A DNA stretch of 64,000 nt, from IMG/VR virus record IMGVR_UViG_3300021440_000013, positions 1 through 64,000 of that record; one strand, given 5' to 3'. A program made the position numbers and the translations under genes. Each line of letters opens with the position of its first letter. Positions within the stretch are counted from its first letter, which is position 1. The notes under the pieces were generated by a model. The model did no database searches and was not told the origin of the DNA. It was given only the letters and a program-made list of their open reading frames with translations. Below are positions 2,270 to 21,991 of this stretch, in pieces.

Positions 2270-4126
2270 ATGGCCACCAACTTCATCAACCCGAATGCCA
2301 ACCAAACCGCCGAAGGTGCTGAAAAGCAACCCGCTCAGCGCACCTGGTCTTTCCACAGCTCCAACCTCCTAGGTTCGCCCGTGGCAGCCGGCGTGGGTGG
2401 TGAGTATCTCCAGAAGTTCCGCCAGACGCTGGCTGAGATCTATAAAGAGATCGTCCCTGGCGTTGAAGTTCAGATGCTGACCCTGAACCGGCAGAACACC
2501 CCGGCACTGCGTTTCTCCGCGATCATCATCGCGTGCCGTATCCCCGAAGTCAGTGTGAACCACGTCGCGTTTCATACGCTGATTCTGGAGGCTACCGGTG
2601 AGCGCCTCCAGCCGGTGATGCGTAACATCGATAACCAGCAAGTCCGGGTAAACCTGGTGACGCCCGACGCGTTCGACGAGGTCCTGCGTAAGATCGCCTA
2701 CGACGCAGTCTCTGAAACGTACCCTGGCGCACCGGTGGTTGTGGCTGAAGGTATGGTGGTTCCGGCTTCCATCGTCCCGAGCAACAAAGATACGATCGAG
2801 AACATCGCCCGTAACGCCGCGATGGCGTGCTTCTCGGAGCTCTCGGTACAGACCAACAACTTTGGTCAACTGAACCTGGCTTACATGGAAAAAGATGTTC
2901 GATTCACCATCGACGTCTCTTTCGGTAACCATCAGGTGACCGATTTCACCGGTATGCCCCAGCGTGCTTCGGTGCTGATTGGCTTTAACAGCCAAAAGAA
3001 GATCGCGGGTCAACAAGGCTGGGGTGTCGAAACGATCAACATCCCGGATTCGGTGTCGCGTATTTGCGAACTGGGCGGTTTCCTTAACCCGATCTGGGCA
3101 CCGGTGGCTCAACAGAACGCCTATGGCCTGGGTTACGGTAACTACATGCAGCCGCAGCAAATCCAACCCACGCAAAAGTTCGCGGCGGAGTTCGTGATTA
3201 CCAGCGTGCGCAGCGACCATGCAACGAGCCCGGCTGCCGTTCTGCTGGCGCTCTCGTCATTCCTCTCCATCGTTGACAACGACACTTGGATCCAAGGTTT
3301 CTTGCCGCGTGGTGGCCAGCGTGATCGCAACCAGATCGATATCACGGATATCGGTGCCCTCAACATCACGGCCAATTTGGCTAACGAAAAGGACCAAGGT
3401 GATTTCGGTACGCCGATCGACACGGCTCCGATGCGCAGTGACCTGCGTGAAGCCAACAAGTATCTGGTCTCGCTGTTCCAGCCGGGTGTAGTGGTGTCGA
3501 TGGACTGCCCGGAAGTGGGTCCGTCTTCGTGGTACATGACGCCCTTCGCGCTGGCTTCGATGGGGATCGGTGACAATGCTGACCGTATCTACAACGCCGC
3601 GATGGAGCTGACCAACGGTAACTTCGGTAAATACTTCGATCGTAAGACCCGGATGTTCAGCAACAGCCAACGTGTTCCGCTGGGTTATTACACCGTCGGT
3701 GATAAGCAGTTCGATATCCGCAGTATCGATTACGTGGCCATCTGCAATCAGTTCCGCAATAACCCGCAGATGATCCATGAGTACAGCAACACCTTCGTGC
3801 CGCGTCAAGGTGTCTCCCCGGCGCGTAACCTCGCGATCCGTGAAGGCATCATTATGCAGGCTCTCAACGAGCAGGCAGTCATCACCGGCTATGCTTCTCG
3901 TGTGACCTTCAGTCGTGAATTTGTTGAAGCGCTCTCGATGGCCATGTCAGATTGCAAGCTTCCCGTGACCGTCAACACCCCGCTCAATGCAGACCAACTG
4001 CGCTCGGGCGTGGCTGCGCCTGACTTCATCAGTGGTTCTCTGGCCCGTGGCACCCATACCTTCAACAGCGGTTATGGTGGTCAGCGTGTTCAGACCAACT
4101 ACACGGGCAATGCGTTCCGTCGTTAA
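2270..4126 (+). CDS. chmA: Chimallin (phage nuclear shell protein)
   Basis: 618 aa; segments align by eye with recalled 201phi2-1 gp105 (VITSVR..WIQGFLP..DIGAL; LGYY..D.R.ID; TGYASRVTFSREFVEAL); SD GGAG, strong codon bias, downstream terminator. Confidence 0.9.
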   Translation: MATNFINPNANQTAEGAEKQPAQRTWSFHSSNLLGSPVAAGVGGEYLQKFRQTLAEIYKEIVPGVEVQMLTLNRQNTPALRFSAIIIACRIPEVSVNHVAFHTLILEATGERLQPVMRNIDNQQVRVNLVTPDAFDEVLRKIAYDAVSETYPGAPVVVAEGMVVPASIVPSNKDTIENIARNAAMACFSELSVQTNNFGQLNLAYMEKDVRFTIDVSFGNHQVTDFTGMPQRASVLIGFNSQKKIAGQQGWGVETINIPDSVSRICELGGFLNPIWAPVAQQNAYGLGYGNYMQPQQIQPTQKFAAEFVITSVRSDHATSPAAVLLALSSFLSIVDNDTWIQGFLPRGGQRDRNQIDITDIGALNITANLANEKDQGDFGTPIDTAPMRSDLREANKYLVSLFQPGVVVSMDCPEVGPSSWYMTPFALASMGIGDNADRIYNAAMELTNGNFGKYFDRKTRMFSNSQRVPLGYYTVGDKQFDIRSIDYVAICNQFRNNPQMIHEYSNTFVPRQGVSPARNLAIREGIIMQALNEQAVITGYASRVTFSREFVEALSMAMSDCKLPVTVNTPLNADQLRSGVAAPDFISGSLARGTHTFNSGYGGQRVQTNYTGNAFRR

Positions 4127-5060: not shown

Positions 5061-6590
5061 TTAGAACAGACTGTCAGAGCCGCCTTGATAACCACTGCCT
5101 CCACGCGGAATTTTACGAAGCGGGCGATAGTTCTCTATATGGAGGTTACTCGGGATCGGCATCTTAGAGGGCGGGAAGGGCAAGAAGAAAGAGCGCGCTG
5201 ATCCTTCAACCGGTGTCGGGAAGCGGTGCTTATCGAGTACGACATGAAGGTAATCACCATTCTCTGTCTCGACCTTGTGGATGAGTAGGCCGATGTCGTA
5301 GATCCGATCAAGACCTTTGGTCTTCTCGAAGTAGCCACCCCCTTTAATGGTATTGAGGAATTGCTCATGCGGCACCCCTTGCAAGAGCCGTTTAGCATCG
5401 GTCGAGAGTTGATGCGGAGTGATGAAAAGAATGTTATTGGCTGCTGAGAACGCCCGGATGCGTGAAAGCATATCCATGACATCGTCACCCATGCTACCCT
5501 GGTTGCAGCCCGTAGTCGGAAGCTTCGAGAGATAATCCACCTCCAAGACTTCGATTGAATAACCCATCGATTCAAGCTCAACCACGCGGTTGATCAATGA
5601 TTGATAGGTCCAACTGGTGGGATTCACCTCATCCATCAGGATGTGGTAGCCATTGACCTGTAGGCACTGCTTAACATAGGAGATCATTTCGTCGACCGTT
5701 ACTTTCTTAACGTCGACGAAAATACCCGTTTCCTGGTATTTAAAGAGCTGATACAAAAACTGTGCGTTATTACGGAGCGGATCTTCGAAGGTCACCCGGT
5801 AGAGCAGCGGCTTTTTCTTCGGATCTTTGGTTTTGGGTTTGTTGAAAAGTGCGATGTGGGCAAACAGGGACAAAGCGAAGCCGGTCTTGTAGTTGTGTTG
5901 AAGTGCGCCAATGACCACGGTGTCACCTGGACGAGGACCCCCCTGAAGCGCTTGGTTGAGTTCTTTCCAACCCGTCGTAAACGCCAAGCCTTCTGAGTTC
6001 GACGCTGCCACCGTGTTGAAGATTTCTCGCATGGAGGTGTCGTCACCGATATCGAGACTGCTGGTGATAGCGGGGTCTTTGGCTACGGCTTTACTTGAAG
6101 TCACTTCGAGCTCCAGGATAATGTTACGAATGTACTCACCCATGTCAGAAATGGTGTGGCGTTTAAAGTTGATGTCGGCGTGTGCCCGCGCAACGATCTC
6201 GGCTAAGCGCAGCTCTCTAAAGTAGTTGAGAAGCGTTTTTCGAAGCGTGGTGATGGTGCGTTTAAGGGTGGGTGGATTCAGTTCACCTTCGAGACCTTGA
6301 GAGATCGCTGTGTAGAGATTGAGATCTCCGTTAGTGATAATCCGAATCTGTTGAAGCAGCTCGAGTAGATCGTACTCGTGACCGATTCGGTTATTACCCA
6401 TCTCGAGCGCAAGCTTACGAAGCTCAAGCGATGTGTCACGACGGGTCGGGATACCGATCACTTTGTCGTTGATCTTGACTTTCTCAAGAATAGTTTTCAC
6501 GAGACCGGAGCTATTCTCGGTCGCGTTTTCAAGTTGCGACTCACGGAACAAAAGCGTGATGCATTTAGAGAGTAGGAGATTGACTTCCAT
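5061..6590 (-). CDS. dnaB: DnaB-like replicative helicase (phiKZ gp118-like)
   Basis: TTGWKELNQAL..GDTVVIGALQHNYKTGF variant Walker A, VDYL Walker B, HQLS, KHR arginine finger. Confidence 0.88.
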   Translation of the reverse strand: MEVNLLLSKCITLLFRESQLENATENSSGLVKTILEKVKINDKVIGIPTRRDTSLELRKLALEMGNNRIGHEYDLLELLQQIRIITNGDLNLYTAISQGLEGELNPPTLKRTITTLRKTLLNYFRELRLAEIVARAHADINFKRHTISDMGEYIRNIILELEVTSSKAVAKDPAITSSLDIGDDTSMREIFNTVAASNSEGLAFTTGWKELNQALQGGPRPGDTVVIGALQHNYKTGFALSLFAHIALFNKPKTKDPKKKPLLYRVTFEDPLRNNAQFLYQLFKYQETGIFVDVKKVTVDEMISYVKQCLQVNGYHILMDEVNPTSWTYQSLINRVVELESMGYSIEVLEVDYLSKLPTTGCNQGSMGDDVMDMLSRIRAFSAANNILFITPHQLSTDAKRLLQGVPHEQFLNTIKGGGYFEKTKGLDRIYDIGLLIHKVETENGDYLHVVLDKHRFPTPVEGSARSFFLPFPPSKMPIPSNLHIENYRPLRKIPRGGSGYQGGSDSLF

Positions 6591-6735
6591 GGTTTAATGA
6601 GTCCGTTTGGCTGTTATTCAAGTTATACGTGGGTCAGGATCGTGGTCTAAAAGATTTAGAGTCATACGAATTTTAAATTCCTTCTCGTTAGGCATCGGTC
6701 ATAAATCTCTTCTCTTTAGTAAAGGATATCGAGAC

Positions 6736-7389
6736 ATGTACTTCGAAACCACTGCGGATACTTCCGTACTCAATTACACACATCCGAGTTATTTTGTGAT
6801 ACCCGGTTGGATCTTTGACGCTTTTACGCGTCGCTTCAGTCTTTCTGAGATCCACGAATATGGGAAGCTGCGTCAAGTAGCCTCCATTCAAGATGTCGCA
6901 CAACTCGAGATCTATGTGACCGCCCTCTTTAATAAAGGCGGTCTGGGAGATATAGATTGCTATGAATTGTCTTCTTTGATCTTTGGGTCTCATTCACGCA
7001 TCGATAACGTGGATCTGCCTAAGGTGACTGAGGAAGAACGCATCGAAATCCAGTCAACACTTAAACTGCTTCTTAAATCTGAGGCAGCGCGTCACGAAGC
7101 CCTTAACAGGCTTCGTAATGTGGAGCGAGGTGAAGAAGGTTGTCTTATCGCCAGCTTAGGTTTTCCTCAATCCAGTGAGAGTGCTGATCAAGTCCCTTAC
7201 CGTATCATTACGCGTGAGGATTGCTTGTATATCATTGTGGAGGAAGGCTTTCTCTCGCATTTTGAGGGTAAAGCCGCGCGGCTTGCCTTCCTTACCCAGG
7301 TCTTGAAAGCGGCTTATGCGATTTACCCGCTGGAAGTAGTGAATCGCAGTGTGTGGTACTCCCACTATGTTCAAGCGCTTCGGCCTTGA
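6736..7389 (+). CDS. Hypothetical protein upstream of capsid gene (gp119-like position)
   Basis: ATG 6736 with AAGGA SD within ORF 6607..7389; lies between helicase and MCP. Confidence 0.6.
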   Translation: MYFETTADTSVLNYTHPSYFVIPGWIFDAFTRRFSLSEIHEYGKLRQVASIQDVAQLEIYVTALFNKGGLGDIDCYELSSLIFGSHSRIDNVDLPKVTEEERIEIQSTLKLLLKSEAARHEALNRLRNVERGEEGCLIASLGFPQSSESADQVPYRIITREDCLYIIVEEGFLSHFEGKAARLAFLTQVLKAAYAIYPLEVVNRSVWYSHYVQALRP

Positions 7390-7435
7390 AACTCGTTTTA
7401 AACTTTGCAAAGTTCAACACAAGAGGTAATTCCCT

Positions 7436-9607
7436 ATGAGTATCAAATCCAACTCCCTTCGGGGCGGCCAAGTTCATTCGAGCTCCCAAGATGCTCGTTT
7501 CCTGGGTGAACTGAACGCCGCACTGCTTGACAGCGCTCCGGTTCCGGGCAACATCAGCCGTCGCCTCTTCGCTACCGAAGCGATCAGCGAAACCGACATG
7601 ATCCAGATCGACAGCGCCGCTTCGAACCTGGAAGCCACCCTGCGCTCTGTTTCTGGCAAGCTCAACCTGAATATCGCCGGCAATTCCATCTGGGTGGCCG
7701 AACAAGCTGCTGTTCAAGGTGGTCTTCTGGCCAGCGATCCGGCCGCTTTTGCTGGCCGTTCTTCCGACTTCCCGCAGCACAGCACCGCTGACAAGTTCGT
7801 GATCGGTGCTTCCGGTGATCCCGGCTATGTGGGCAAGCGCTCCACCGTCTTCGCAACCGAAGCGTTTGACAACCGTGAAACGCGTAACGCCGTACTGTAC
7901 ACGATGGCGTACAACTACTCGGTGGCGCGTCAAGATGAATTCGGCGAAACCGTGTGGCCGACCCTGACTCTGCCGGCTGACCAAGTGGGTTTTGGCATCG
8001 TCGTGAACCGTCTGACCATCCATCGTGGTGTGACCCATACCGTGGACGGTAAGATCGTTGACTTCAACAAGAAGGATCTGATGCGCGCTGAAGCGGATCA
8101 CACCATCCTGCTGAAAGACAAAACCCGCATCTACCCGGTGGTGCGTCCGGCAGCGATCAATAAGTTCGTTGATGCGGCCCTGATCGCCCCTTACGCCTAC
8201 GACAACGAAGGCGTTGTGATCAACACCGCTCCGTACCGTGTAGGTGAAGAAATCGGCATCGTCGGTATCTCCCAGACCGACGCTCAGCTTGATGCTGGCT
8301 CGGCCAACCAGACCGACACCGTGGATCCGGCCATCTCGCTGGAAAACCTCTACGTCAAGATCGGTAATGATATCATCACCTTCCCGGTCTACAGCCAGCC
8401 GACGGCAAACTTCACCTACGCACCCCAGGGTCTGGACAAGCTGCGTGTGCTGAACTTCCGCAGCAAGGCCGTCTCGATCTCCAACAAGACCAAGCAGTTC
8501 AACGGCGCCGCACTGGTGGCTCTGGCTGACGTTGTGACCAACAACTACACCGTTGTGGTTGAACTGGTTGCTACCGGCGAAGCCAACACCGAGTTCGGTT
8601 CGGTCGTGGTCTATGGTAACAAGGTTGCCATCGTCAAGGTGCAGGATGCTGACGGCAAGCTCATCGCTGACAGCAACCCCGTGGTCCAAGATGTGCGTGC
8701 CGCTTTCTCTGGCGCTCAGATCATCGGCTATGACCTGCGTGCTTACAAGACCAACATCAACATGCGTGAGCGTGGTGATTTCATCGATCGCACCCACTTC
8801 ACCCAGCTGTATGAAGTGCCCCTGCTCTCCCCGATCACGGCTCAGCGTCCGCAGAACACCGACGGCCAACTGGACGCTGGAGACTTCGAAGCCCTGGTTA
8901 CCGCCACCCGTTTCCGTCTGAAGAACGATGCCGTTACCGCAATCTTCGAATGCTCCAAGCGTCTGCAAGAGCATATCGAAGGGGGTTCGGCAGGTGAAGA
9001 AATTCCGGCAGCCATCGGTGCCGCACGTTACCATGTTCGCCCGACCTTCTACGCACCGGCGCCGTACGACGTCACCGCCATCGTTCAGAGCCTGAACAGC
9101 TCCGATCTGGCCTCCGATCTTCAGTCCGCTATCGTGAACATCGTGCGTGACCTGGCTTTCCGCATGTACGTACATTCGGAATATCAGGCTGCTGCTTCCG
9201 CACTGGGTCAAGTCGGTAACCCGACGGTGACGATCGCAACCGATCCGATCCTGCATCGTTACCTGATGATCAATGGCGATCTGCGCACCCTGACCGAAAA
9301 GTTCAGTGTTCGCATCGTCTCGACCCTGGACCGCCGTTTCACCGGCAAGATGTTCATCACCTTCGGTGTGTTCGACGAGAACCGTAACCAAGCGCCGAAC
9401 CTGCTCAACTGGGGCAACCTGGTGTATGCGCCGGAAGTCGTGATGACCGCCTCGGTGCCACGTGGTGAATCGCTGTCGCGCGAAACCATCGTGCAGCCGC
9501 GCTACAAGTTCGTCAACCATCTGCCGATCGCCGCCATGCTCTCGTTCGTGAACGTGCCGGATCTGTTCGCTGACGGTCAAGCGTTCATCACCACCGTTAA
9601 GCCGTAA
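7436..9607 (+). CDS. Major capsid protein (phiKZ gp120-like)
   Basis: 723 aa; ATE maturation sites (FATEAF), ARQDEFGET, N.RERG, LNWGN..PE and VQPRY motifs; SD GAGG; extreme codon bias. Confidence 0.9.
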   Translation: MSIKSNSLRGGQVHSSSQDARFLGELNAALLDSAPVPGNISRRLFATEAISETDMIQIDSAASNLEATLRSVSGKLNLNIAGNSIWVAEQAAVQGGLLASDPAAFAGRSSDFPQHSTADKFVIGASGDPGYVGKRSTVFATEAFDNRETRNAVLYTMAYNYSVARQDEFGETVWPTLTLPADQVGFGIVVNRLTIHRGVTHTVDGKIVDFNKKDLMRAEADHTILLKDKTRIYPVVRPAAINKFVDAALIAPYAYDNEGVVINTAPYRVGEEIGIVGISQTDAQLDAGSANQTDTVDPAISLENLYVKIGNDIITFPVYSQPTANFTYAPQGLDKLRVLNFRSKAVSISNKTKQFNGAALVALADVVTNNYTVVVELVATGEANTEFGSVVVYGNKVAIVKVQDADGKLIADSNPVVQDVRAAFSGAQIIGYDLRAYKTNINMRERGDFIDRTHFTQLYEVPLLSPITAQRPQNTDGQLDAGDFEALVTATRFRLKNDAVTAIFECSKRLQEHIEGGSAGEEIPAAIGAARYHVRPTFYAPAPYDVTAIVQSLNSSDLASDLQSAIVNIVRDLAFRMYVHSEYQAAASALGQVGNPTVTIATDPILHRYLMINGDLRTLTEKFSVRIVSTLDRRFTGKMFITFGVFDENRNQAPNLLNWGNLVYAPEVVMTASVPRGESLSRETIVQPRYKFVNHLPIAAMLSFVNVPDLFADGQAFITTVKP

Positions 9608-15104: not shown

Positions 15105-16415
15105 ATGAAACTGATCGACTATCTTCTCTTTGCGATTCAAGAGAAGTGTTATAAAAAGAAAGCCTGGGTGATAAGCGTCTTTTCAATTACCCAAGAGAGC
15201 GATGAACAAAAGAAAAACACCTATCCCGGCAAGCTAATACGTGAGCCGTTTGGTTTCTTTACCGTCACCAAAGAGAATGAGAAAGTTCAGATCGAGACGA
15301 AGAATCCTTTGACCGAACCGCTTTTGACGATCAAAGAGCGTCTGACAATCACCAAGGCCTGGATCGGTTCGTTACGGGAAGACAGTTTAGAGACGAGTAT
15401 TGGCACCCTCTTGGTCAACCTCATCTGCCTTTACGAAGCATTTGGGGATAAGTTCCCGTATAAGGCGGGAACTTTTAGCCCTAAGGATCTTGAAAAAGAG
15501 ATCGTTAAAAAACTCCAAGACACGCCTAAGCCTGGCGCGGCTCGTGAAGAAGGGGTGTATTATGTCGACGAATATCTAAAGTTCTGTGAAGGTATTCTTT
15601 TTCTAGAGAGCTTTACACAGATCTTTACGCACTCCATCACTCGCCAAGGTCTTCTTCCGGCGCCTGGGCGTAAAGCTTTTCGTGAGGAGTTGGTTAAGAA
15701 GTATGGCGACACCCTGCGCGACCCGGTCACGATGGCTAAGTTTGAAGCTGAACTATCGGCTTTTGATAAAGCGTACTTAAAGAGCGATCCTGCCTATGGT
15801 AAATTCATGTCTGGCAAGGTGGCTAAGAGCCGCATGAAGGCCTACATGACCCAGGGCGGTGAATCGAATAGCTTTATCCAGGCCATGGAGGTTACGCCCA
15901 TCGTCCAGCCACTGGAGGAGGGTTTCCCGATCGATAAAGAAGGCTTCACGGCCGTATCTAACACGATCCGTTATGGTTCTTTTTCACGAGGCTCAGAGAC
16001 CGTGAACGGCGGCGTCACCGCTAAAGCACTGATGCGTGCCGCAGACAACTGGAAGATCACCGAAGGCGACTGTGGAACAACCCTGGGTATCCGGCGTCTT
16101 TATCGAGAAAATGAAATCGAACACCTCGTCGGGCGCTATGTTATTCAAAACGGAAAGAGCGTTGTCATCGAGACGATGGATCAGGCACGCGCCTTTATCA
16201 ACCAGAAAATTGTTCTGAGAAGCCCACAATACTGTAGGAGAAGTGGCACACAAACCTGTGAGGTCTGTGCCGGGCTTGCACTTGCTAAGTACCCCACTGG
16301 CCTGCCGATCCCTCTTATGGAGGTCTCCGGCGGCATCCTAACCGACAGTCTTAAGTTGATGCACAACACAACGCTCGTAACCGAAGTCGTGCATCTGCCC
16401 AGTGTAATCACCTAA
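15105..16415 (+). CDS. rpoC: Virion RNA polymerase beta-prime C-terminal-part subunit (phiKZ gp80-like)
   Basis: ITEGDCGT..LRSPQYC..TCEVCAG beta-prime Zn-binding motif; LKLMH trigger-loop-like end. Confidence 0.85.
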   Translation: MKLIDYLLFAIQEKCYKKKAWVISVFSITQESDEQKKNTYPGKLIREPFGFFTVTKENEKVQIETKNPLTEPLLTIKERLTITKAWIGSLREDSLETSIGTLLVNLICLYEAFGDKFPYKAGTFSPKDLEKEIVKKLQDTPKPGAAREEGVYYVDEYLKFCEGILFLESFTQIFTHSITRQGLLPAPGRKAFREELVKKYGDTLRDPVTMAKFEAELSAFDKAYLKSDPAYGKFMSGKVAKSRMKAYMTQGGESNSFIQAMEVTPIVQPLEEGFPIDKEGFTAVSNTIRYGSFSRGSETVNGGVTAKALMRAADNWKITEGDCGTTLGIRRLYRENEIEHLVGRYVIQNGKSVVIETMDQARAFINQKIVLRSPQYCRRSGTQTCEVCAGLALAKYPTGLPIPLMEVSGGILTDSLKLMHNTTLVTEVVHLPSVIT

Positions 16416-17978: not shown

Positions 17979-17989
17979 TCACCACTAAC

Positions 17990-18022
17990 GAGATGAGAGA
18001 GGGTTTAGCCCTCTCTCATCTC
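17990..18022. terminator. Terminator-like hairpin
   Basis: GAGATGAGAGAGGG-TTTAG-CCCTCTCTCATCTC. Confidence 0.75.
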
Positions 18023-18059
18023 AAGTCAGTAAATTCTTTTTAACCTCTGAGATAGTCTG

Positions 18060-18260
18060 GTGGAATGAATCTACTCGGCTAACACTCACTAGCTGAAACA
18101 CTGTGTTAGTTTTCTTACTAGAACGCTAGCACAGGAGCATGAGTATTTTTTCATACGTAAGAAAACAATGCTGCACGTGTCAGCGGCACGTGCAGCAACC
18201 TCCCTAGGGTCTACATCATTAGGGAGTGTAAACTTTTTTACCCTTTACGAAAAGAAGTTT
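18060..18260 (+). ncRNA. Candidate structured RNA upstream of tnpB (omega-RNA-like or regulatory leader)
   Basis: Stems CTAACAC/GTGTTAG, GTTTTCTTAC/GTAAGAAAAC, TGCTGCACGTG/CACGTGCAGCA, CTCCCTA/TAGGGAG. Confidence 0.45.
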
Positions 18261-18263
18261 GGT

Positions 18264-19424
18264 ATGGCTAAACCATCTAATCGTATTATCAGAGGTTTTA
18301 AGTATTGTATCCATCCCTCGGAGGAACAAAAGGTAGAGTTAAATTCTATTTTAGAAGACTGCCGACGCATTAGAAACAAAGTCAGCAAAGTCATGCATAC
18401 GTTAATTCCCAGAAATCAAAACTGGGAAGACGTCTTTAAGCTAGAAGATGCACTTAAAGTTGCCCAAGGAATTAAAACCCAGTTCTTTAAAACAACAAGA
18501 GCACCCGCACGTTCACTCACAACAGCCATCGAAATACTTTACCAGCTTCATAAGAAAGCGATTAAGTTGCGTGTTAAGCCGCCAGGCTACAAACACGAAG
18601 AAAGTCACTTGGCGGTTCACTACCCACACGAACTCTATAAGCTCTGTGGCGATCATCTTACACTCTCAGGTATAACGGGCGATATTCGTATAAACCTAAG
18701 CAGACCTATGCCAGATGGTAAAGTTCATAGAGTCGTGGTGAGTCGCGATATCTCTGGAAGGTACTTCATTTCGTTTACGATCTGTTTTGTTAAACAGATC
18801 GAACATGGTGATAAGACCATCGGTCTAGATCTCGGTGTCGATGACCTTGTCACGACGTCTGAAGGGGTTCGCTTCGAAGCTAAACTCAAGGCAACGGATG
18901 TTCAGCTTAAGTTGAACTGGTATTTCGATCTTCTTAGACGCAAGACAGTGATGTCTAGGTCTTGGAAAGCGCTAAAAGAAAAGATCCGCAAATACAAAAC
19001 ATGGGTGATGAATACTCGGATCGAACAGTTCTATGAGATCGCCACTGCTGTTGTAAAATCAGCATCAGCGATTTCGATGGAAAGGCTTAACATCACCAAA
19101 CTTTTGACTCAGCCGCGTCGGGCTTTTCAGATTTCACACTCTGGCTGGAATGATTTGAAACGAATATTGGTTGCTAAAGCCGAAGAAGCACAGATCGTGA
19201 TTGGATTTGTAGGGCAGTATTACCCAAGCACTAAGACGTGTTCACGTTGTGGCTATGTTTTGCCAAAATCACTTCCTCTCACAATTCGTTCATGGCAGTG
19301 TCTTGAGTGCTCTTCAATCCATGATCGCGATGTTAACGCCGCGATAAATATTCGAGACTGTCTTTCGAGCTGGATAAAACGAGGCGTGTATAAAACCCAA
19401 CATAAAGTTGTTCTCTTAAACTAA
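18264..19424 (+). CDS. tnpB: TnpB-family (IS200/IS605) RNA-guided RuvC endonuclease
   Basis: N-terminal FKYCIHPSEEQ HTH, GLDLG (RuvC-I D), SMERLNI (RuvC-II E), STKTCSRCG..WQCLEC Zn ribbon, DRDVNAAINI (RuvC-III D); ATG 18264 likelier than 18168. Confidence 0.92.
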   Translation: MAKPSNRIIRGFKYCIHPSEEQKVELNSILEDCRRIRNKVSKVMHTLIPRNQNWEDVFKLEDALKVAQGIKTQFFKTTRAPARSLTTAIEILYQLHKKAIKLRVKPPGYKHEESHLAVHYPHELYKLCGDHLTLSGITGDIRINLSRPMPDGKVHRVVVSRDISGRYFISFTICFVKQIEHGDKTIGLDLGVDDLVTTSEGVRFEAKLKATDVQLKLNWYFDLLRRKTVMSRSWKALKEKIRKYKTWVMNTRIEQFYEIATAVVKSASAISMERLNITKLLTQPRRAFQISHSGWNDLKRILVAKAEEAQIVIGFVGQYYPSTKTCSRCGYVLPKSLPLTIRSWQCLECSSIHDRDVNAAINIRDCLSSWIKRGVYKTQHKVVLLN

Positions 19425-19455
19425 CGATCCATAGGCTTTGAGGCCTATGGATCGT
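19424..19455. terminator. Hairpin immediately after the tnpB stop
   Basis: ACGATCCATAGGC-TTTGAG-GCCTATGGATCGT, perfect 13-bp stem; no T tract. Confidence 0.5.
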
Positions 19456-19842
19456 CGTGTCTGTACAAATGCTATTCAACGTCAGCTTGAAGAATTAACC
19501 GCAATTGTCAAACAAAAGTTTGACAGCATGAGCGCTTTGCAACAGCTGTATTTCAAGGGAATTCACAGTCGTGTCGACTTGATTCGGGCATGCCCGATCG
19601 AGAAGATGAGCCACCTTCTCGAGGAATTAAACCTCGTCGACCAATTTATTAAGGTCGTCGAGCAGGCTTTTAAAGATATTGAAAGACCCGCCCGTGAACA
19701 CAGATCTGCTGGCCGCCCTGATGTGACTTGGCATCAGGAGCAAAATCAGTTTCACCGCCAGCAATGGCAAATGCTGCATCAAGAAACTGTGAACCAGTTT
19801 CAACATCAGCAACACATGCAGCAGCAGCAGCATTTTTACTAA
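19447..19842 (+). CDS. Hypothetical protein with Q/H-rich C-terminus
   Basis: ORF 19438..19842, ATG at 19447; followed by hairpin 19848..19878. Confidence 0.55.
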   Translation: MDRRVCTNAIQRQLEELTAIVKQKFDSMSALQQLYFKGIHSRVDLIRACPIEKMSHLLEELNLVDQFIKVVEQAFKDIERPAREHRSAGRPDVTWHQEQNQFHRQQWQMLHQETVNQFQHQQHMQQQQHFY

Positions 19843-19894
19843 ACCCTACGAGGGGTGTGTATTTGGCACACCCCTCGTCTATGGAGTATACCAG

Positions 19895-20251: not shown

Positions 20252-21991
20252 TCAAAGATCGTCAAAGTAACCCAGTGCGGCCTGTGGCGGCGGCAATCCA
20301 TGCATCACCGACACATACTCAAGTGCATTCACATGCCCCTGCATGAGGTTAATATTCTGACACCGAAACTGAACTTCATCCACACCAACGATATCGACGA
20401 TCTCTTTGACGGTCGTTTCACGAGACACATTACCGACCGCTGTACAGCTTGGATAGGCTGACACAGCATCAGAGTCATAGACAAAACACCGGATCAGGCT
20501 GTGAAGTCTAGGGTTTTCAAGAATACACTGTCGACCCAGCACAGACATATGTGCAGGAAGTGTTACAATCCATCCCCGTAAAGACATGATTTCTGTCTTT
20601 TCAACATAGCGCTCTTCGTCCCCTGTGTTTTCTTCATCCTCGTCTTCAACGATTTCATCATCTGCCTCTTCGACAATCTTAGCGCGTGGAGGAATCGTGC
20701 CGATCACTTTTCCTCTTTCTAGGAGGAAAAAGTGATAGCTATCAGCAAACCGCTTAGTCTGCTTATCGAAGAACATAAAGTCAGACACATCTGAGTTCAC
20801 CGGAACGGAGGATTGAAGATCGTTGTTTTTCTCTTCTAACTCCACCATCCCGATACAGTCAAACATGTTGTAGACAATGTATTCAAAAGGATACTTTGAC
20901 TGCATGAGCTCATGCCACTCTAGCTCAACATACCCTTCAGCTTCTTGAAAGTTAAGTTTTCTTAACCCGAGTTCATCATTGAGGATACTGTCAAGTTTGT
21001 ATTCAGGGCGTTCCTGTTCACCTTGTCGAACAAATCGAAACGCACACATCGCATCGATTACGTAAAAACCCGATGGACAGATAAGGGTGTGCCACTGCTC
21101 CGATGGGTTCTTGGGTTTGACCTGTCCGGATGCGGTGATCTTCTTGGTTGAGCCTTTCTTATACCGTGAAAAGCGAAACTCAGTGGGTAGTTTTGGATCA
21201 CTGAAGACCTCTTTGGGGTCAACGCCATATTTTTCAAGCGTCTCAATGATACGCGGTATGTCGAAGTCGATGTTCCAGATGGCTAAGAAATCCGGAACCA
21301 ACTCATGTGCTTTAGCAAAGACCCCTTTAATCAGATCGACCGGTGTCGCGCACTCCGTAAAGACGATCTCATAGTGATGCTTGTCGATGTAGGTCTGAAG
21401 GTATTTTTTAACGGCTTGATCAAGCTGGTGTGTTGGGTTACTGTACCCAGCGATAAAGCTCGTAAGGCAAAAGGTGTAAATCGTCTTACCAAAGATCAGC
21501 GTGGCGAGAATAGGGTCATTGGTGCCGTGGAGCACGTCCGTCTCGATGTCAAAGAAACTCACCGTGAAGGGCGAAACAAGATCAGGAAACTTCTTTCTAT
21601 ATTCGTATTTGATAATTGAACTACTGGAGACATCAGAGCCGTAAAGATAGGGTGACTCAGCGAGCTGCTGAAGCTCAGCAGTGGACCACGCCTCATCGAG
21701 CGCCTTAGCCACACTACGACGCAGGTTCGATTGAGTGCATTCAAAACGAAGGAGTTTATCGACGACTTCGTATTCTTTTTTTTGCTGGTGATTACGGTAG
21801 GGTTTTTTAGTGACCCAGAAGGGACGCTTAAAGTCAAAAATATACCGGATGTTAGGTTTAACCGTTCCGTCATCGTAATGGATGACTTCTTTGATGAGGT
21901 GAAGGTCTTGTCTATCGGCTTGGCGTGTCGGGATATGGACAACAAACCGACACTCCCGACCAACTTCTTTTTTAACTTCTTCTAGAGCCAT
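20252..21991 (-). CDS. Split family-B DNA polymerase, exonuclease + motif A subunit (phiKZ gp82-like)
   Basis: ExoI FFDIETD, ExoII WNIDFD, ExoIII YNMFD, pol motif A DAVSAYPS; no motif B or C. Confidence 0.85.
   Translation of the reverse strand: MALEEVKKEVGRECRFVVHIPTRQADRQDLHLIKEVIHYDDGTVKPNIRYIFDFKRPFWVTKKPYRNHQQKKEYEVVDKLLRFECTQSNLRRSVAKALDEAWSTAELQQLAESPYLYGSDVSSSSIIKYEYRKKFPDLVSPFTVSFFDIETDVLHGTNDPILATLIFGKTIYTFCLTSFIAGYSNPTHQLDQAVKKYLQTYIDKHHYEIVFTECATPVDLIKGVFAKAHELVPDFLAIWNIDFDIPRIIETLEKYGVDPKEVFSDPKLPTEFRFSRYKKGSTKKITASGQVKPKNPSEQWHTLICPSGFYVIDAMCAFRFVRQGEQERPEYKLDSILNDELGLRKLNFQEAEGYVELEWHELMQSKYPFEYIVYNMFDCIGMVELEEKNNDLQSSVPVNSDVSDFMFFDKQTKRFADSYHFFLLERGKVIGTIPPRAKIVEEADDEIVEDEDEENTGDEERYVEKTEIMSLRGWIVTLPAHMSVLGRQCILENPRLHSLIRCFVYDSDAVSAYPSCTAVGNVSRETTVKEIVDIVGVDEVQFRCQNINLMQGHVNALEYVSVMHGLPPPQAALGYFDDL

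Follow-up and report, generated by a model that had tools for sequence, protein, structure and literature searches.

What is a tnpB gene with an apparently intact nuclease doing between the RNA polymerase (RNAP) and DNA polymerase genes of a jumbo phage: is it a gene that the phage has co-opted and fixed, a stray insertion sequence (IS), or a mobile cassette of another kind? The gene, here tnpB-A, lies in the first 64 kb (64,000 nucleotides, the window analysed here) of a 216,876-bp IMG/VR record, IMGVR_UViG_3300021440_000013, which carries direct terminal repeats and comes from a freshwater metagenome assembly. Our analysis suggests that TnpB-A looks like a mobile accessory cassette rather than a co-opted gene that has become fixed. 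Five diverged paralogues (A to E), of which it is one, are present in this genome, and the most informative feature of the A locus, overlooked in the initial annotation of this DNA, is a conserved structured element that lies upstream of the gene.

The gene and the hairpin at its end are as follows.
18264-19424, plus strand: tnpB copy A, 386 amino acids, with the RuvC residues D189 (18828-18830), E273 (19080-19082) and D356 (19329-19331)
19424-19455, plus strand: 13-bp terminator-type hairpin abutting the stop codon, its fully complementary arms (19424-19436 and 19443-19455) enclosing a 6-nt loop

Judged by alignment, TnpB-A is a genuine, intact RNA-guided TnpB nuclease. It matches Pfam PF07282 (Cas12f1-like_TNB) at 1.7e-18 and 67 bits, over a cut-off of 26.3, and PF01385 (OrfB_IS605) at 28.2 bits, slightly below the 30.5-bit cut-off. 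Among solved structures searched with phmmer, the best match is the TnpB of ISDra2 (IS200/IS605; 8BF8/8EXA; E 1.4e-24), a protein of the same family and size with which the D-E-D triad and the zinc ribbon align residue for residue: the GxDxG motif takes in D189 and the DRDxNAA motif D356, E273 matches the catalytic Glu, and the CxxC…CxxC ribbon is made up of C326/C329 and C346/C349. Gene callers start the gene at an upstream ATG at 18168 (418 amino acids); 18264 is the better start, because all paralogues align from there. At a threshold as loose as E<=1, the whole genome still gave no Y1 transposase (PF01797) and no serine recombinase (PF00239). Terminal repeats, whether inverted or direct, were not found around tnpB-A either, and the upstream and stop-codon hairpins share no sequence relation by which they could be read as the left and right ends (LE and RE) of an IS. 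The ATG of the next open reading frame (ORF), at 19447, lies within the 3' arm of the stop hairpin. These results bear out much of the initial annotation, which had described a catalytically intact TnpB with its triad and zinc ribbon, no Y1 or serine transposase, no recognisable IS ends, and a stop codon followed at once by a 13-bp hairpin and another gene. Its placement of the locus between RNAP and DNA polymerase genes is equally correct. Upstream stand an RNAP beta-like subunit gene (15105-16415; phrog_2962, 1e-103), a DprA-like gene and a 251-amino-acid gene (p251), and downstream, on the minus strand, a DNA polymerase B gene (20252-21991; phrog_3011, 2e-181) whose product is 36-42% identical to the polymerases of phiKZ-like phages. 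The annotation had also spoken of a nucleus-forming phage; the phage probably is one, a homologue of the phiKZ gp54 shell protein (chimallin) at window positions 2552-3997 (619-aa open frame, 24% identity, E 2e-8) giving moderate support.

The five TnpB paralogues of the genome are all intact, all on the plus strand and 28-55% identical to one another, C and D being 55% identical. In genome coordinates they are as follows.
18264-19424, plus strand: TnpB-A, the reference copy
80542-81690, plus strand: TnpB-D, 33% identity to A
85047-86198, plus strand: TnpB-B, 38-39% identity to A
94157-95305, plus strand: TnpB-C, 35% identity to A
212498-213691, plus strand: TnpB-E, 28-31% identity to A

When a profile of the five copies was scored against 1.84 billion representative proteins, the only matches above 370 bits were A, the B-like P0086, D, the E-like P0088 and a further protein, P0089, the next match standing at 241 bits. 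The closest cellular TnpBs are about 27-33% identical to TnpB-A, and nothing nearer than about 33% was found in IMG/VR or among GenBank phages, TnpB homologues being present in 392 phage records. In a maximum-likelihood (ML) tree, ten family members fall on one side of a 100/99 branch that separates them from the 20 best outgroups, with the topology (P0089,(A,((B,P0086),(C,D)))) plus the E group. The members found outside this genome sit in contigs of related jumbo phages, namely L090 and L132, which come from one sample and are here called phage 2, and L088, here called phage 3; their flanking genes are collinear with those of this phage at 35-83% amino-acid identity. By this tree and these searches, we regard the family as monophyletic and confined to phages. 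The D-E-D triad is unchanged in the five paralogues and three outside homologues (eight aligned family members). The first zinc-ribbon pair reads S-C-C rather than CxxC in B, C and D, which retain the second pair (CPxC), while CxxC is kept in A, E and P0089. Copies B, C and D have terminator-type hairpins comparable to that of A, likewise taking in the stop codon; in B, the pairing is preserved in the orthologue through a compensatory change, and a conserved AT-rich promoter motif comes next.

Orthologous TnpBs are kept by purifying selection across phage lineages. E and P0088 are 86% identical in amino acids with a dN/dS of 0.08, E and P0235 of phage 2 are 70.5% identical with a dN/dS of 0.145, and B and P0086 are 78% identical with a dN of 0.13, their dS being saturated and their four-fold sites 40% identical. 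These estimates rest on the orthologues of E and B, as A is without an orthologue to compare; TnpB-A is nevertheless of full length, with all its catalytic residues, and occurs in a metatranscriptome contig.

Related noncoding elements of about 150 nt lie upstream of copies A, B, C and D. At tnpB-A, the element and its surroundings are arranged as follows.
18023-18044, plus strand: degenerate AT-rich early-type motif, recognised by eye against the extended motif (…TATATATTACTTGAC), a putative promoter
18045-18197, plus strand: conserved structured element of about 150 nt (the 5' unit) upstream of TnpB-A, a candidate guide-RNA scaffold
18169-18197, plus strand: 11-bp GC-rich hairpin that closes the unit, helix 3 of the model, present in all six units with a variable loop
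18198-18233, plus strand: variable segment after the unit, with a 7-bp hairpin, a candidate guide or attenuator
18234-18241, plus strand: TTTTTTAC motif, putatively promoter-like, 22 nt ahead of the tnpB-A start codon

The A unit folds with a z of -5.5 against shuffled sequence. A consensus alignment of six units (A, B, the B orthologue, C, and the two D units described below, D1 and D2) gives 22 pairs in three helices, with 93% of cells paired and compensatory double changes at 12 of the 22 pairs, including all five (5/5) of the long-range helix. None of 500 shuffles reached the observed values on four of five measures (8/500 on the fifth), and when the alignment was slid as a control the paired fraction fell to 27-47%. 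A covariance model built from the six units, under which the A unit scores 92 bits, recovers only those six in the genome and in the loci of relatives, with no orphan copies. Between this phage and the phage 3 orthologue, the core of the B unit is identical at 122 of 139 positions (88%), as against 40% at four-fold sites; in the B gene itself, first and second codon positions are 83-90% identical and third positions 46%. We conclude that the upstream element is functional, because it is structured, covarying, conserved like non-synonymous sites and found only beside TnpB. No canonical ωRNA is evident over the 3' end of the B ORF, since that end (67-77% identical) is no better conserved than the rest. 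No Rfam family reached its gathering score in the window, and the CRISPR repeats included in that search gave no significant match. The one notable match at E<=1, in which the last part of tnpB-B (its 3' end) scored 36 bits with TD-2, below the cut-off of 48.7, was set aside as a generic three-hairpin likeness to a Treponema-only motif.

The remaining members of the family carry their structured RNA elsewhere. In E and P0089, as in ISDra2-like TnpB, a structured, ωRNA-like region follows right after the stop codon, whereas A to D have a terminator hairpin at the 3' end and the structured element on the 5' side. The region in P0089 is a closed multi-helix structure of about 157 nt, followed by about 30 nt and then a 13-bp GC hairpin. 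That of E is a conserved scaffold which also begins immediately behind the stop codon of E-like genes in two other phages (contigs L132 and L089); both contigs end within the first E-type unit, as if the repeat had broken the assembly. The model of the 5' unit finds a weak collinear match of 23 bits in the 3' region of P0089, the top plus-strand match beyond the six training units in 288 kb. We infer that the upstream units of A to D may be relocated relatives of a 3' ωRNA.

At two loci, whole units are repeated in tandem. Two units with a period of 232 nt precede TnpB-D (genome 80065-80525; L004 1018-1478), and three with a period of 218 nt follow TnpB-E (genome 213692-214300; L005 2685-3267). 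D1 and D2 agree at 114/124 positions of the scaffold and 38/41 of the promoter-like block, as against 14/35 of the leader of about 35 nt and 15/33 of the segment of about 33 nt after the closing hairpin. The E1-E3 scaffolds are 86-92% identical, and in the 29 nt that follow them E1 and E3 agree at 24/29 positions while E2 agrees with either at just 11-12/29. A conserved scaffold with swapped flanks is how specificity segments would be expected to look. Searching IMG/VR with D-type and E-type unit motifs returned chance palindromes or nothing, and the D-type pattern in JGI metagenomes returned this phage (in two assemblies) and three unrelated hairpins with no TnpB nearby.

Every D and E unit ends in a T-run plus AC motif, and the same motif stands ahead of tnpB in A, C and D; TTTTTTAC has 16 + 7 copies in the genome against about 3.6 expected per strand. 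A second motif, AT-rich and about 30 nt long (TTTCTAAAA…TATATATTACTTGAC), occurs at window position 2146 and at genome positions 70127, 86249, 88168, 101749, 116194 and 121229; it is present at at least seven genome sites, upstream of genes, and also in the slots of relatives. It fits the description of jumbo-phage early promoters (PMC7598289) and probably represents, in this group of phages, the early promoters, the class used by the virion RNAP.

Is the locus transcribed? In a freshwater metatranscriptome (run X2), the region is present at 100% identity, in separate contigs of differing depth.
Upstream genes: depth 32.9
17982-19399, the unit and tnpB-A: depth 11.3
131-amino-acid ORF downstream of tnpB-A: depth 2.7-4.4
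DNA polymerase gene: depth 20.4
This unevenness of depth argues for RNA over carried-over DNA. The contig with tnpB-A starts at 17982, one base past the position (17981) at which nucleotide homology to the relative L133 ends, and has 28 unaligned T-rich letters before 17982, which may mark the end of an RNA, stem from graph branching in a mixed population, or be artefactual.

How fixed, then, is the gene? Five relatives that keep the flanking core genes have the A slot without TnpB. Their DNA polymerases are 88% (L133), 74% (L134/L135), 68% (L136) and 61% (L176/L177) identical to that of this phage, and for L133, L134 and L136 a tblastn comparison bore out the order RNAP-beta, DprA, p251, slot, polymerase; the contig of L174 (polymerase 68%) ends too early to be judged and stands outside the count of five. 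In the relatives, small unrelated ORFs fill the slot over 0.8-1.7 kb, with neither a TnpB nor a homologue of the 131-amino-acid ORF. The edges of the variable region and the companion ORF are as follows.
17990-18022, plus strand: 14-bp hairpin, terminator of the 251-amino-acid gene, left boundary of the stretch in which relatives diverge
19447-19842, plus strand: 131-amino-acid Gln-rich ORF accompanying TnpB-A, its start codon inside the TnpB-A hairpin
19848-19878, plus strand: 12-bp terminator hairpin, right edge of the variable cassette, with homology to relatives back from 19872

Because nucleotide homology to L133 breaks off at 17981 and returns at 19872, and because the relatives hold unrelated ORFs in between, we read the A slot as a cassette replacement behind a conserved promoter position and not as a clean IS insertion. 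The G+C content of the A cassette is 42.6%, against 48.6% for the genome. L133 has a hairpin of different sequence at the position equivalent to 17990-18022. The 131-amino-acid ORF has no match in Pfam, PHROGs or GenBank phages and no homologue in L133, L134 or L136, is unrelated to a 130-amino-acid ORF in the slot of L133, and may travel with the TnpB-A cassette. The stop hairpin of TnpB-A (19424-19455) is identical at 24/30 positions to the terminator (9320-9350) of the p251 orthologue in L133; the stem changes are compensatory and the 6-nt loop is inverted, and the loop of the long hairpin is likewise an exact inversion between units E1 and E2. These likenesses could reflect entry of the cassette between the p251 stop and the old terminator, palindrome flipping by template switching, or chance.

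The other copies differ in how widely they are shared. The C cassette, together with a divergent 169-amino-acid ORF (about 2 kb in all), is missing from phage 2 between the dCTP-deaminase-like and phiKZ_IP genes, and P0089 with its RNA region is missing from this phage between two collinear genes. E directly follows a divergent DNA polymerase gene after a gap of about 20 nt that leaves no room for a left end, and it has the same site in phage 2; the right-hand neighbour of B is common to this phage and phage 3. With E and B syntenic and A, C and P0089 present or absent, the family includes both long-resident and variable copies. The 169-amino-acid ORF (genome ~93420-93926, minus strand; L003 757-1264) is transcribed away from the C unit, and a minus-strand copy of the T-run plus AC motif lies just ahead of its start. 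CTTCCATAG does not hold up as a promoter element of general use, its 39 near-matches being fewer than the 48.6 of shuffled sequence. Its only two exact plus-strand copies each come right after a terminator. One (genome 93397) lies where the C cassette begins on the left, and the other (97276) at the site, empty here, that P0089 occupies in phage 2; a similar sequence flanks the right junction of P0089. In L133, the closest relative, the DNA polymerase gene is split by an insert of about 1.77 kb at a point matching window position ~20567, where the gene of this phage is uninterrupted; the insert contains a 439-amino-acid ORF (6413-7732), a putative homing endonuclease that matches HNH_3 weakly. 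A second mobile nuclease system thus appears to be active beside the A slot. No empty-site joints were seen in read data, in which the other DNA runs held the same phage at low depth or short weak pieces.

These comparisons change the picture that the initial annotation had drawn. Its suggestion that the phage co-opted TnpB stands in so far as the lineage is confined to phages, orthologues are under purifying selection and the locus appears in a metatranscriptome; it does not stand as the claim of a unique, fixed gene, for TnpB-A is one of five paralogues. The check on dN/dS that it proposed returned 0.08-0.15 for the E orthologue pairs, alongside the B pair, while the check on conservation of the locus went the other way, TnpB-A being absent from the slot in the five relatives. 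As evidence against co-option, it had named identical copies with defined IS ends, or empty sites of a recent insertion: there are multiple copies and relatives without the gene, but the copies are diverged and without IS ends, and the slot is not a clean empty site.

The reading that we favour, tentatively and at somewhat less than even confidence, is that of a phage-adapted, TnpA-independent TnpB/guide-RNA cassette that serves as an RNA-guided free-standing homing or competition nuclease, TnpB-A being a working member of a lineage carried by phiKZ-like freshwater jumbo phages. Given patchy presence and diverged paralogues, a selfish or competitive mobile cassette fits better than fixed domestication. 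The cassette would run, in order, from a promoter-like motif through a structured RNA gene of about 150 nt, a T-rich promoter-like motif and tnpB to a terminator hairpin at the stop codon, with the RNA element shifted upstream of tnpB in A to D and downstream, like a canonical ωRNA, in E and P0089. TnpB would load the RNA of its adjacent element, the putative guide RNA, and the resulting ribonucleoprotein (RNP) may cleave the DNA of a co-infecting relative without the cassette. Repair by recombination could then copy the cassette into the cut genome, which would amount to a TnpA-independent "non-restorative homing" or to marker exclusion; alternatively, the rival genome would simply be damaged by the cut. 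TnpA-independent, TnpB-dependent spread on plasmids or between homologous replicons has been described as "transposon non-restorative homing" (PMC13565253). As with genes for free-standing homing endonucleases, tnpB-A is intergenic between conserved genes and patchy among relatives. The Seg and Mob endonucleases of T4 likewise lie between core genes and vary among relatives (PMC2330249, PMC2790892), the pattern by which marker exclusion or intronless homing is recognised in genomes. Recognition by these enzymes is protein-based, whereas here it would be RNA-guided, and homing by the TnpB cassette is our proposal.

Several observations weigh against a homing or competition nuclease. With unrelated small ORFs filling the slot of relatives, plain recombinational exchange of cassettes would suffice without any nuclease. 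In all TnpB and Cas12 enzymes known to us, the guide follows the scaffold on its 3' side; here, that position runs into promoter-like sequence and, in A, forms a hairpin of its own. Folding energies do not separate the two strands of the element, only a few G·U pairs favouring the plus strand. The synteny of E and B with a second phage fits stable domestication equally well, and to reach the genome of a rival chimallivirus the RNP would need to enter the chimallin shell. Targets were also sought. Scans of the phage itself and of the relatives' loci with 15-16-mers, allowing 1-2 mismatches, gave chance-level matches only; a comparison of candidate guides with the cassette-free slots gave nothing for C or P0089 and, for A, only the stop hairpin that resembles the L133 terminator; and 18-mers taken from the variable segments of A and D2 gave no match in IMG/VR. 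One match of the C segment, at 15/16 positions in the DNA polymerase gene of a relative, was discarded, as it lies within the ~6-7 matches expected by chance. Finally, the metatranscriptome evidence consists of assembled contigs, which do not mark where transcripts end, in which unit and mRNA are inseparable and for which carry-over of DNA is possible.

A separate alternative concerns the element itself, which may be a cis-acting leader, attenuator, terminator or independent small RNA that controls tnpB, the true guide lying elsewhere or being absent. We think this rather unlikely while taking it seriously. With a promoter-like motif behind it, the closing GC hairpin does resemble a terminator-promoter junction, the sequence beyond that hairpin is self-pairing in A, a 5' position is without precedent for a TnpB guide, and divergence in step with the gene is equally expected of a cis-regulatory element. 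However, an active TnpB needs an ωRNA and the A-D loci offer no second structured region that is conserved, the ORF of B being no better conserved at its 3' end than elsewhere; the unit is as conserved as non-synonymous sites and has a weak homology to the 3' RNA of a sister copy, P0089; and the duplicated D units with their swapped flanks are hard to square with a simple leader.

A domesticated effector is the next alternative, and an unlikely one in our estimate: TnpB with fixed guides would cut or bind host, plasmid or unrelated competitor DNA in the cytoplasm while the phage's own DNA is shielded by chimallin, or would regulate genes. An intact nuclease under purifying selection, the synteny of E and B across diverged phages, the arrayed units with differing variable segments and the chimallin homologue are all compatible with such a role, as is the scan of the phage for self-targets, which found none. 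In P0089, moreover, the candidate guide and a hairpin lie inside the inserted DNA and not in the flank, so the guide looks hard-wired. Against this, A and C are missing from close relatives and P0089 from this phage, which makes those copies dispensable, and the scans found no target. A regulatory role is unlikely because the RuvC site is intact. The comparison here is with the TldR proteins, nuclease-dead TnpB-derived RNA-guided repressors (PMC10705468). These are likewise TnpB relatives off the transposon, with a fixed guide RNA beside the gene, but they lack the catalytic RuvC residues that all the phage copies keep.

A bolder form of the RNA-guided reading, which we hold doubtful, takes in the arrays as well: a phage TnpB clade would have its ωRNA as a separately transcribed upstream gene, and that clade and its sister would carry tandem whole-unit arrays, making a CRISPR-independent multi-guide nuclease for homing or for warfare against rivals or host in nucleus-forming jumbo phages. 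That the tnpB genes are ordinary non-autonomous IS1341-type insertions from a host, mobilised in trans by a host TnpA and useless to the phage, is very improbable. In its favour, TnpB-only elements are common, 392 phage records have TnpB homologues, the A cassette is low in G+C and A is absent from relatives. Against it, there is no LE/RE hairpin pair or terminal repeat at the locus, the paralogues are 28-55% identical with no near-identical copies, the nearest non-phage TnpBs are at most 33% identical, the family is monophyletic within phages, orthologues are under purifying selection, and the cassettes stand in a phage-style context of promoters and terminators.

The family can be set beside known systems. 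In comparison with TnpB of IS200/IS605, there is no TnpA and no LE or RE here; in A to D, the element lies upstream between promoter-like motifs and the 3' end of the ORF holds only a terminator hairpin, and two loci have tandem arrays of whole units. IS1341-type elements keep their IS ends and usually occur as near-identical copies. They, too, are tnpB genes without tnpA, variably present between related genomes, whereas the phage copies have no ends and are old paralogues of one phage-confined clade under purifying selection. Cas12j (CasΦ) is a phage-encoded type V CRISPR-Cas system of huge phages. It and the TranC intermediates (PDB 9JFO match) share with TnpB a compact RuvC nuclease, and the repeated modules described here resemble a capacity for several guides. 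Unlike type V CRISPR-Cas12 loci, the phage loci have no CRISPR array or short repeats, and what repeats are whole units of 218-232 nt with promoter-like motifs; no CRISPR arrays were found around A, the sole tandem repeats being those with periods of 232 and 218 nt at the D and E loci. An IStron was rejected, since the five loci gave no match to Intron_gpI, even at E<=1, and the unit is just ~150 nt long.

That TnpB genes are common in phages is already known, and the protein is a TnpB by its sequence and catalytic architecture. In the collection of papers that we searched for TnpB in jumbo phages and for phage homing by TnpB, we found no description of such a family. What is new is a monophyletic, selection-maintained TnpB family in chimallin-encoding jumbo phages with five diverged copies in one genome and, in one clade, an upstream, apparently separately transcribed structured partner, together with tandem whole-unit arrays with swapped segments. 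If the element were only a leader and the cassettes moved by ordinary recombination, the finding would shrink to an exceptionally rich collection of accessory tnpB genes. Cas12 descends from TnpB, and the mapping of TnpB biology outside transposons has just begun. A TnpA-independent lineage in lytic nucleus-forming phages could reveal what roles RNA-guided nucleases play there, be it homing, marker exclusion or attack on host or rivals. Nucleases of about 385 amino acids with candidate RNA partners, in five diverged versions within one genome, are also suited to tests of orthogonality, and the upstream element and the whole-unit arrays bear on how guide-RNA genes separated from the nuclease gene on the way toward CRISPR.

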